Assembly (NCBI GenBank): GCA_002189035.1
Contig: NEEC01000002.1
Span: 4,278,001-4,342,000, forward strand
Source of the DNA: Utricularia gibba
Lineage: Eukaryota; Plantae; Magnoliophyta
Direction: 5' to 3'
DNA length: 64,000 bases
Both the position numbers and the translations under genes were made by a program. The notes under the pieces are model-generated. The model saw only the letters and a program-made list of their open reading frames with translations. It made no database searches and was not told where the DNA came from. Of the stretch, positions 35,135 to 36,387 are shown in pieces (position 1 is the stretch's first letter; the number at the start of each line of letters is the position of its first letter).

Positions 35135-36387
35135 ATTTGTCTAGAGGGATTTGTGATCTAAATGATTTAGCCTTGTATACAATGTCTGTGAACATACCAT
35201 TTACGTCCAATATAATCAACTTTTATTGAGCCTCAGAGGCACTCAAAGAGGGTGTGGTATATGCCCAACAGCTCTCATACAAATCCAACTTATAGCACAG
35301 CTCTTCATTCTACTTTATTATAAATTCAAGTCTATCATCCACATCATTCAGACTATACAAGGTATCAAATCCTACAATAAAATTAGATTTATTAACAATA
35401 GATTCAATAAAAACATTCAATAAGATTAGACTCGATAATAATAAACTCGATAACAATAAACTCAATACACATATTCAATAAGAGTATTGAATAAAAATAT
35501 TCAATAAGGCTAAACTCAATAAGGATAGATTAAAAAAATATTTAATAAAAATAGATTAAATAAGAATATATTAAAAAAAGTATTCAATAAGAATAAATTG
35601 AATAAAAATAGATTCAAAAAAATATTCAACAAAAATATTGAATAAGAATAGCTTTAAAAAAATTCAACAAAAAAATTCAATTAGAATAAATTGAATAAAA
35701 GTATATTTAAAAAAATTCAATAAAAATAGATTTAATAAGAATAAATTCAATAAAAATATTTAATAAAACTATTCAATAAGAATAGATTTAATAAAAATAG
35801 ATTTAAAAAAAATACTCAATCATAATATATTTGTTAAAAACATTCAATATAAATATTTAATAAATATATTGAATATTTTTATTCATATTTCTTTTACCAA
35901 TACAATGAAAGATTTACCTTTAGTGCATGAGGAAATTTGGTTTCCATTAGAAGACGTATCCAAACAAAACTTGTTCATCATTCTTCAAATCTTTTTCTCA
36001 CATACTTCACCAACACCAACCTTTTTTTCCTTTTATGATGTAGTGGTTCCTATTTAAGGTACCAGAGCATACACTCACAGCAAAGAAATAACGAAACTTC
36101 ACCTCAAAAGACAACTCCTCACAAATACTCACAAAGGCCAACATATATGAGATAGATCTTAAAGTCAAATGAGACAAATGAACTTTTAAACATTCGAATA
36201 TTTCTTCTAAAAATGGCAATAATGGTAAGCGCAAACCACAACAAAAATGCTTCGTGCTTAAGATAAATCCCGTTGGATCCACACGGTTTGGAATTTCACT
36301 CTCAATCAACTTATCCAGTTCTTTCTCCAAAATCTCATATTCATCCTGTATCAAGAATCTAGTTCTCAATTTTTTAGAAGTTTTCAT
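35135..36387 (-). pseudogene. Second copy of the Transposase_28-like + FCP1-like cargo gene, 3'-truncated
   Basis: Exon 36387-35918: HFCCGLRLPLLPFLEEIFECLKVHLSHLT..VLVKYVRKRFEE**TSFVW. Intron 35917-35372. Next exon: GFDTL..NEELCYKLDLYESCWAY..KLIILDVNGMFTDIVY. Confidence 0.8.
35390..35880. repeat. AT-rich degenerate tandem array (ATTCAATAA-type units)
   Basis: Repeated TTCAATAA/TTGAATAA/TAGATT units; fills most of the cargo-gene intron. Confidence 0.8.

Follow-up and report, generated by a model that had tools for sequence, protein, structure and literature searches.

A diverged TRP28 module joined to a probable HAD-like region in two DNA-transposon contexts of Utricularia gibba: a third gene in a PIF/Harbinger element and a truncated fragment in a hAT-like element

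The TRP28 domain (Pfam PF04195, Transposase_28) is otherwise known from transposable elements (TEs) only (PMC11963269). In Retand gypsy elements it is found as an extra open reading frame (ORF) in antisense orientation (PMC11963269; PMC6317226), which is present in 97% of recently active Retand clusters and has no known function (PMC11963269). A 2025 survey described it as lacking similarity to other known TEs (PMC11963269), and others have predicted that it binds DNA. The capture of gene fragments by non-autonomous hAT and PIF elements (Pack-hAT, Pack-PIF) is likewise on record (PMC8903248). Here, we describe two copies of a gene containing a TRP28 module and a probable HAD-like region in a 64,000-nt window of Utricularia gibba (contig NEEC01000002.1, positions 4,278,001–4,342,000 of the forward strand; the window denotes this whole stretch). 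One copy lies within a complete PIF/Harbinger element, and the other, a dead and truncated 5' gene fragment, lies within a non-autonomous hAT-like element (Table 1).

The two copies are located 30 kb apart, the hAT-side copy on the minus strand (36387→35175) and the Harbinger-side copy on the plus strand (3229→5603), and they are collinear at the protein level. Comparison by tblastx revealed five collinear matches, from 36390–36223/3226–3393 down to 35309–35175/5469–5603, with a sum E value of 3.7e-28 when the hAT-side region was compared with the Harbinger-side region and of 4.4e-24 when the Harbinger region was compared with the rest of the window, where no third cargo copy was detected by tblastx. 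An earlier note on this DNA had aligned several peptides of the two copies, and checking of the coordinates on both strands located these peptides where it had placed them: KKLRTRFLIQDEY (36337–36375), GLRLP (36223–36237) and KLIILDVNGMFTDIVY (35175–35222), the last containing DVNG, on the hAT side (minus strand), and their partners at 3241–3279, 3346–3393, 3599–3655, 5469–5519 and 5556–5603 on the Harbinger side (plus strand). The sum E values demonstrate that the proposed alignment is significant.

Over 200 ungapped aligned codons, the copies share 42% amino acid identity, with a proportion of nonsynonymous differences (pN) of 0.385 and a proportion of synonymous differences (pS) of 0.80, which is saturated. 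Identity at codon positions 1, 2 and 3 amounts to 56, 67 and 34%, respectively, and no usable nucleotide similarity between the copies was found by blastn, whose top match covered 46 nt (E 0.002). Judged from these alignments, the homology of the two copies is real and ancient, and the codon-position pattern is that of two coding sequences long diverged under purifying selection. A recent local duplication, which the earlier note had also dismissed, is rejected because pS is saturated and DNA similarity is gone; local duplication of any kind is ruled out as the source of the two copies on the same grounds. A retro-copy origin was likewise considered and is ruled out by the retained intron.

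The hAT copy opens with an ATG codon (36385–36387) that starts an intact ORF of 126 amino acids (36007–36387, minus strand). This ORF matched the TRP28 family of Pfam with 32.3 bits against a cut-off of 26.2 (E 1.1e-7; match spanning 36076–36261), and the Harbinger piece at 3372–3608 scored 25.2 bits, just below the cut-off (E 1.9e-5), because a frameshift splits the domain. On the strength of these profile matches, domain 1 is taken to be the known TRP28 domain, not an unknown module. When the 126-amino-acid ORF was searched with phmmer against 1.84 billion representative proteins, a collection that includes many Lamiales proteomes (as shown by the search with a MAKR4-like gene from the window), a single weak match was obtained, a TRP28 protein of Rubroshorea (E 1.7e-4). 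The similarity of the cargo to Retand-type proteins is low (31–35% identity, 38 bits at best). The closest database relatives form a large TRP28 family, with at least 120 members, in one dipterocarp genome, that of Rubroshorea leprosula, and a search seeded with the Rubroshorea match returned a Retand family of one species in which every member carries TRP28 alone, giving a shallow alignment. In the R. leprosula contig BPVZ01000005.1 (10001–18732), one member of this family lies in antisense orientation immediately downstream of a gypsy gag-pol, as in Retand elements. A hidden Markov model (HMM) constructed from the Rubroshorea TRP28 proteins alone picked exactly the two cargo loci from a six-frame translation of the window, with E values of 2e-9 for the hAT-side locus and of 1e-4 and 0.02 for pieces of the Harbinger-side locus. 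The AlphaFold2 model of the TRP28 ORF, computed from a shallow alignment, reached a mean predicted local distance difference test score (pLDDT) of 60 and a predicted template modelling score (pTM) of 0.40.

Like the Retand TRP28 ORFs, both cargo copies are borne by TEs and are of unknown function, and their exon 1 can be aligned with Retand-type proteins over the TRP28 core and the conserved stretch following it (hAT residues 35–122), the order being GLR.P.. - HY..GK.. - W..F.WV.. - EW.T in both. Retand TRP28 positions reported as well conserved are G21, P25, L34, P46, N47 and F55 (PMC11963269); the G..P of GLRLP and a downstream Leu and Phe are present in both copies, the mapping to that numbering being approximate. 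In contrast to the Retand ORFs, where the QLTPN motif includes a conserved Pro-Asn pair, the hAT copy reads LTLRS and the Harbinger copy LTPCS. The carriers are DNA transposons (PIF/Harbinger and hAT-like) instead of an LTR (long terminal repeat) retrotransposon, and the cargo gene contains a spliceosomal intron and a HAD-like region. Furthermore, both copies sit inside elements with terminal inverted repeats (TIRs), not in the Retand place (antisense, after pol and before the 3' LTR), and neither gag nor pol was found next to either copy in the window.

The two parts of the cargo gene are joined by an intron whose position is conserved. In both copies, exon 1 ends at the same codon boundary of the alignment and is followed by GT, which defines a phase-0 intron, and AG directly precedes the Asn codon that opens exon 2. 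The borders read AAG/GTAAAT (donor at 35917) ... GTAG/AAT around the 608 nt of the hAT copy, and ACA/GTGTTA ... CAGAG/AAT around the 1774 nt (3695–5468) of the Harbinger copy. The intron sequences themselves are unrelated: about 500 nt of the hAT spacer (35374–35875) consist of an AT-rich tandem repeat with units of 13–93 nt (Tandem Repeats Finder), whereas the Harbinger intron contains a nested repeat at 3719–4404. Since the phase-0 intron position and both flanking exons are conserved, these data support a single two-part gene in the common ancestor of the copies; the shared position, together with a codon identity that is highest at position 2, then 1, then 3, points to one gene long under selection.

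Regarding the state of the copies, what remains of the gene in the hAT-like element is exon 1, the intron and roughly 45 codons of exon 2, with motif I as the only part of the second domain. Similarity ends right after DIVY at 35175, about 10 codons past motif I, and the gene is cut at about 35150–35170, inside the exon, against the direct repeat R1 (which begins at about 35145). No counterpart of the later HAD-like exons (5745–6396 of the Harbinger copy) was detected anywhere in the hAT-like element by tblastx or blastn. The remaining sequence carries one frameshift (at about 36016–36028) and three in-frame stops: a TAA at 35223–35225 and, at 35975–35980, two TGA codons opposite the TGG TGG (Trp-Trp) of the Harbinger copy, which account for the double asterisk in the peptide of the earlier note. 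Each exon 1 TGA corresponds to a single G-to-A change, as expected of deamination in methylated TE DNA. The hAT copy is a dead, truncated 5' gene fragment. It most likely has no protein function at this locus and at most could express a TRP28-only peptide of 126 amino acids. The Harbinger copy is also a pseudogene, with frameshifts at about 3390–3393 and about 3521–3527 in exon 1 (3229–3694) and stops between the pieces of the HAD-like exons (5469 to about 6396; motif I at 5571–5582, AIWSS at about 5790, LLIND at about 6080). The earlier claim that the same two-domain cargo gene sits in the hAT element is not supported as worded, and the intact shared cargo that it assumed is found in neither carrier.

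The second region starts with KL(L/I)I(F/L)DVNG..DIVY in both copies, and in the Harbinger copy it continues in the order KLLIFDVNGVL (motif I), FDVAIWSS (motif II) and NTLLINDALYK..NP..NAIFP (motif IV region). Motif I reads D-V-N-G-(V/M) in both copies (5571–5582 and 35196–35207), the first Asp being kept and Asp+2 being Asn, so that a DxDx(T/V) motif with both aspartates occurs in neither; the acidic pair of motif IV reads N-D in the Harbinger copy. The domain was scored as separate exon pieces. No Pfam HAD or NIF match was obtained with six such pieces, even at E values up to 10; phmmer searches of the PDB with three single pieces returned only noise, and a word-index search with the 95-amino-acid exon 2 piece found nothing. 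A two-sequence profile of motif I, when compared with the PDB, yielded HAD hydrolases in 9 of the 12 matches listed, aligned at motif I, with E values of 0.4–1.5. The second region is absent from the Retand-type TRP28 proteins checked. Overall, domain 2 looks HAD-like, a motif-based reading without statistical support.

The motif order of the Harbinger copy and the predominance of HAD hydrolases, aligned at motif I, among the PDB profile matches resemble the HAD phosphatases FCP1/SCP1 (NIF, PF03031), from which the cargo differs in the Asn at Asp+2 in both copies, in the N-D pair of motif IV and in the absence of a significant Pfam or PDB match. We take the FCP1/SCP1-NIF branch, suggested by plant NIF-like proteins, as a lead only. 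Since the acid/base residue Asp+2 is Asn in both copies while the nucleophile Asp is kept, the HAD-like domain is probably not a working phosphatase, and a module of this kind would be more likely to bind than to hydrolyse a phospho-substrate. The ancestral protein may accordingly be proposed as a regulatory TE accessory factor in which TRP28 was tethered to a HAD-like module lacking the acid/base Asp. A comparable pairing exists in the host MAIN/MAIL1 proteins, which contain the plant mobile domain (PMD) and partner the phosphatase-like protein PP7L. In both cases a TE-specific domain meets a phosphatase-like, probably catalytically impaired module; the likeness is one of analogy, as TRP28 is not PMD, the HAD-like region is not of the PPP type, and both parts are found here in one gene. 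The PMD is also present in Ogre elements (PMC6317226). By analogy, this likeness points to a regulatory, chromatin or transcription-related role for the cargo, away from transposition chemistry.

To delimit the carrier of the truncated copy, the window was scanned for 8-bp duplications bracketing inverted ends, and one clear solution was obtained, the 3138-bp element of Table 1, whose terminal sequence, given as a string, is TAGAGGTGKGTYCGGTTC. This agrees with the earlier description of a carrier with an 8-bp target site duplication (TSD) and hAT-type ends. The 18-nt degenerate TIR was found in the window solely at the two ends of the element, and a TSD and TIR equally good were observed in 1 of 1000 local shuffles. 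Moreover, 14 of the 67 CGGTT/AACCG repeats of the window fall within the 370 terminal bp of the element, at both ends. The hAT TIR consensus starts with YARNG and is accompanied by short subterminal repeats, and the ends TAGAGGTG.. with their subterminal repeats fit this pattern. Rice Dart/nDart hAT elements may also begin with TAGAGGTG. The 8-nt TSD is a hallmark of hAT elements (PMC8903248). No hAT transposase motif was found in the six frames of the element or elsewhere in the window, and no Pfam match was obtained with the 9 scanned non-cargo ORFs of at least 35 amino acids (21 listed) inside it. The carrier is therefore called hAT-like and non-autonomous. No further members of this hAT family or of the repeat R were detected within the window.

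Inside the element, the cargo fragment and a region of about 560 bp upstream of it (36388–36949) are flanked by two direct repeats, R1 and R2. Self-comparison by blastn gave 83% identity between 34836–34973 and 36943–37078, and 72% between 35016–35131 and 37086–37188. The acquisition event would be old, since R1 and R2 are now only about 77% identical overall.

The carrier of the other copy, which the earlier note had likewise assigned to PIF/Harbinger, could be delimited completely. Its left junction reads TAA/GGGCGCATTTGGTTG (441–458) and its right junction CAACCAAACGTGCCC/TAA (7993–8010), that is, the 3-bp TAA/TTA duplication and the GGGC..TTTGGTT-type TIRs that define PIF/Harbinger ends. 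The transposase scored 28.8 bits with DDE_Tnp_4 against a cut-off of 24.8 (E 1e-6, at 1894–2229) and 21.1 bits with Plant_tran. The second, Myb/SANT-like ORF matched Myb_DNA-bind_3 with 20 bits, below the 23.6 cut-off (E 1.4e-3), and the combination of a DDE_Tnp_4 transposase with such an ORF places the element in the PIF/Harbinger superfamily. Two observations were made on its terminal regions: the 5' subterminal region contains a perfect 20-nt palindrome pair (574–593/610–629) around a run of 13 G, and AAACCCAC-type motifs recur at both ends.

In agreement with the earlier view that the carriers are unrelated, blastn detected no DNA common to them apart from the coding segments of the cargo, and no non-cargo Harbinger sequence inside the hAT-like element. 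The GC content (0.47–0.50) and the GC content at third codon positions of the Harbinger copy match those of the element's own ORFs; its GC content also equals that of a neighbouring host gene, so composition does not tie the cargo to the element.

Table 1. Features of the two carrier elements and of the cargo copies that they contain (positions within the window).
Feature	Positions	Strand	Basis or description
Non-autonomous hAT-like element, 3138 bp	34493–37630		TSD/TIR scan and sequence reads
TIRs of hAT-like element	34493–34510, 37613–37630		TAGAGGTG[T/G]GT[C/T]CGGTTC, 18 nt, 16/18 identical
TSD of hAT-like element, 8 bp	34485–34492, 37631–37638		ACTAGCAC
R1, AT-rich direct repeat, about 300 bp	34845–35145	+	abuts cut 3' end of cargo fragment; self-blastn
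R2, second copy of R1 repeat	36950–37200	+	other side of fragment and upstream region
Exon 1 with TRP28 module (hAT copy)	35918–36387	-	Pfam, HMM, frame and splice-site reads
Intron-like spacer, 608 nt, 16% GC (hAT copy)	35310–35917	-	GT..AG borders
Exon 2 start, NEELCYKLDLYESCWAY..KLIILDVNGMFTDIVY (hAT copy)	35175–35309	-	tblastx, 44% identity over 45 residues
Complete PIF/Harbinger element, 7564 bp	444–8007		sequence reads of both ends
TIRs of Harbinger element	starting at 444; ending at 8007		GGGCGCATTTGGTTG..; GGGCACGTTTGGTTG..
TSDs of Harbinger element	441–443, 8008–8010		TAA
Harbinger transposase	917–2229	+	DDE_Tnp_4
Harbinger-borne cargo paralogue, pseudogene	3229–~6396	+	between transposase and Myb-like ORF; translations, splice-site reads
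Myb/SANT-like ORF of Harbinger element	6886–7860	-	Myb_DNA-bind_3 match at 7456–7860

Several explanations of these observations were weighed. We favour, with moderate confidence, the view that the hAT side is a dead 5' fragment of a TE-associated gene lodged in a non-autonomous hAT-like element, as an old Pack-type capture or a deletion remnant. A captured fragment or deletion remnant is preferred over a maintained cargo because the element has no transposase, the exon is cut and the fragment lies between direct repeats. The parent family would have combined the TRP28 module, the phase-0 intron and a HAD-like domain with a D-V-N-G motif I; one diverged member would be the third gene of the PIF/Harbinger element, and a different, distant member would have supplied about 1.8 kb (upstream region, exon 1, intron and the first 45 codons of exon 2) to the hAT-like element. 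The neighbouring Harbinger copy was considered as the donor and is ruled out, because pS is saturated and no other Harbinger sequence is present inside the hAT-like element. The DNA may have been gained during double-strand-gap repair after excision, if repair synthesis jumped to the donor gene as template and then resumed at a point upstream of where it had left, which would explain the 300-bp duplication R1/R2 flanking the insert; the tandem-insertion and re-mobilisation model known for Pack-TYPE elements would be another route. The element would then have transposed and decayed through drift of R1/R2, two TGG to TGA changes, one more stop and one frameshift, while AT-rich tandem repeats came to fill the intron. 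The sequence itself shows the homology, the boundaries of both elements, the truncation with its lesions, the shared intron position and the identity of TRP28; we infer how the capture took place, that domain 2 is of the HAD type and what the gene originally did. Weighing against it, a single member of the hAT family is visible in the window, and no donor locus was found either in the window or by protein searches. The fragment retains its start codon, some 560 bp upstream of it and an intact ORF over the whole TRP28 domain, as would equally be expected of a deletion derivative whose parent element had the full gene. The template switch is deduced from the R1/R2 duplication alone, and the HAD assignment of domain 2 has no statistical support, with nothing from Pfam and E values of at least 0.4 in the PDB.

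A different origin of the same fragment would be a true shared cargo, that is, a TRP28-HAD-like gene carried and selected in both the PIF/Harbinger and hAT lineages after moving between superfamilies, the element described here being an internally deleted, Ds-like derivative that lost its transposase and the 3' part of the cargo. The native order of start codon, upstream region, exon 1, intron and exon 2 start is in keeping with this, as are a codon-position pattern suggestive of purifying selection in both lineages for most of their separation and the restriction of TRP28 otherwise to TEs (PMC11963269). Additionally, phmmer and the word-index search turned up no annotated plant protein that rivals the Harbinger copy in closeness to the hAT copy, which speaks against derivation from an ordinary host gene. 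However, the element contains no trace of a hAT transposase, only a single copy is at hand, and a cut that falls within an exon and abuts one of two copies of a 300-bp repeat is seen more typically where filler DNA was acquired than after a simple internal deletion; we consider this origin rather unlikely. Movement of the module between superfamilies, one of the two origins that the earlier note had inferred, is plausible on the evidence of this one window. If both copies were instead transduplicated pseudogenes of cellular paralogues, captured independently from a TRP28-HAD-like gene family of the host that is not mobile and may be domesticated, their pseudogene state, the intron kept in both (hence copied from genomic DNA), the existence of both Pack-PIF and Pack-hAT elements (PMC8903248) and the host-like GC content of the Harbinger copy would all be accounted for. 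A conserved host gene, however, should have been annotated and detected, and the phmmer search, with Lamiales proteomes included, returned one weak, Retand-type match and the exon 2 search none, which makes this source decidedly unlikely. It is highly improbable that the 1.8-kb piece with R1/R2 is a separate small element or fragment (LTR-like, from a TRP28-bearing retrotransposon) nested in an ordinary hAT miniature inverted-repeat transposable element: the 300-bp direct repeats on either side of the insert recall LTRs, but R1/R2 lack obvious TG..CA ends and show no primer-binding site by eye (no scan for primer-binding sites or polypurine tracts was run), no gag/pol remnant by the fragment and no other copy of R in the window were found, Retand-type TRP28 proteins have no HAD-like region, and the cargo still has its spliceosomal intron. 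Chance similarity or a low-complexity artefact might be suspected in so AT-rich a region (GC 0.25–0.31), but this idea has a negligible probability and is already refuted by the match statistics, given five collinear matches with a sum E of 4e-24, separate Pfam and HMM matches to one family (TRP28) in both copies and a conserved intron position.

Under the capture or deletion-remnant view favoured here, the hAT-like element is best compared with the Pack-TYPE elements (Pack-MULE, Pack-CACTA, Pack-hAT, Pack-PIF), with which it shares the combination of TIR and TSD, the lack of a transposase and a size of about 3 kb (PMC8903248), as well as the content, a truncated and decayed fragment of a coding gene that includes an intron. 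Unlike in those elements, the captured sequence is a TE accessory gene and no ordinary gene of the host, a 300-bp duplication lies around the insert, and a single copy is seen. As for the presence of the captured gene elsewhere, the sole other copy at hand is a distant paralogue with 42% identity.

The window consists of plant nuclear DNA that is AT-rich and crowded with transposable elements. A copia-type LTR retrotransposon (8633–28034) is bounded by LTRs at 8633–9387 and 27325–28034 that are about 86% identical; its reverse transcriptase and integrase ORFs lie at 9270–12029 (minus strand), and its interior is swollen by other nested repeats. The repeat nested in the Harbinger intron (3719–4404) belongs to a non-coding family with other copies at 20338–21570, 25557–26864 and 46511–49108 (minus strand). 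A further family of about 1.2 kb is represented by three copies that are 67–87% identical (33502–34393, 39644–40804 and 53003–54195; minus strand), and the hAT-like element was inserted about 100 bp past the first of them. On its right side, the hAT-like element is followed after about 550 bp by a tRNA-Lys(UUU) gene (38177–38248, minus strand; Rfam 72.9 bits; ARAGORN). The MAKR4-like gene mentioned above, encoding a membrane-associated kinase regulator, is a single-exon gene at 43090–44151 (plus strand) whose closest database matches are from Lamiales (Paulownia, Sesamum, Handroanthus; 54–58% identity).

The capture of gene fragments by hAT-like elements and the occurrence of TRP28 as a TE accessory domain are already known. 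In the literature searched, we found no TRP28 in DNA transposons, no TRP28-HAD-like junction and no TRP28 gene as the third gene of a complete PIF/Harbinger element, and searches for a TRP28-phosphatase fusion or a third Harbinger ORF returned nothing relevant. The hAT locus itself is an ordinary decayed fragment with no likely present function. The significance of these findings lies in a diverged TRP28 module that occurs in two DNA-transposon settings and that a conserved intron links to a domain that is probably HAD-like and catalytically altered. If confirmed genome-wide, this arrangement would provide a handle on the origin of TRP28 and a testable idea of its role, namely that it recruits a phospho-protein or is recruited to one, for instance during transcription or silencing. 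It is conceivable, though doubtful, that plant DNA transposons possess TRP28-HAD-like as an accessory gene family not described so far, which would be a true third gene in one lineage of PIF/Harbinger elements, would be related to the Retand antisense ORF and would have been exchanged among LTR, PIF and hAT elements. Were this so, it would constitute the first link of Retand TRP28 to other TE classes, and its pseudo-phosphatase partner would be a clue to the role of TRP28.

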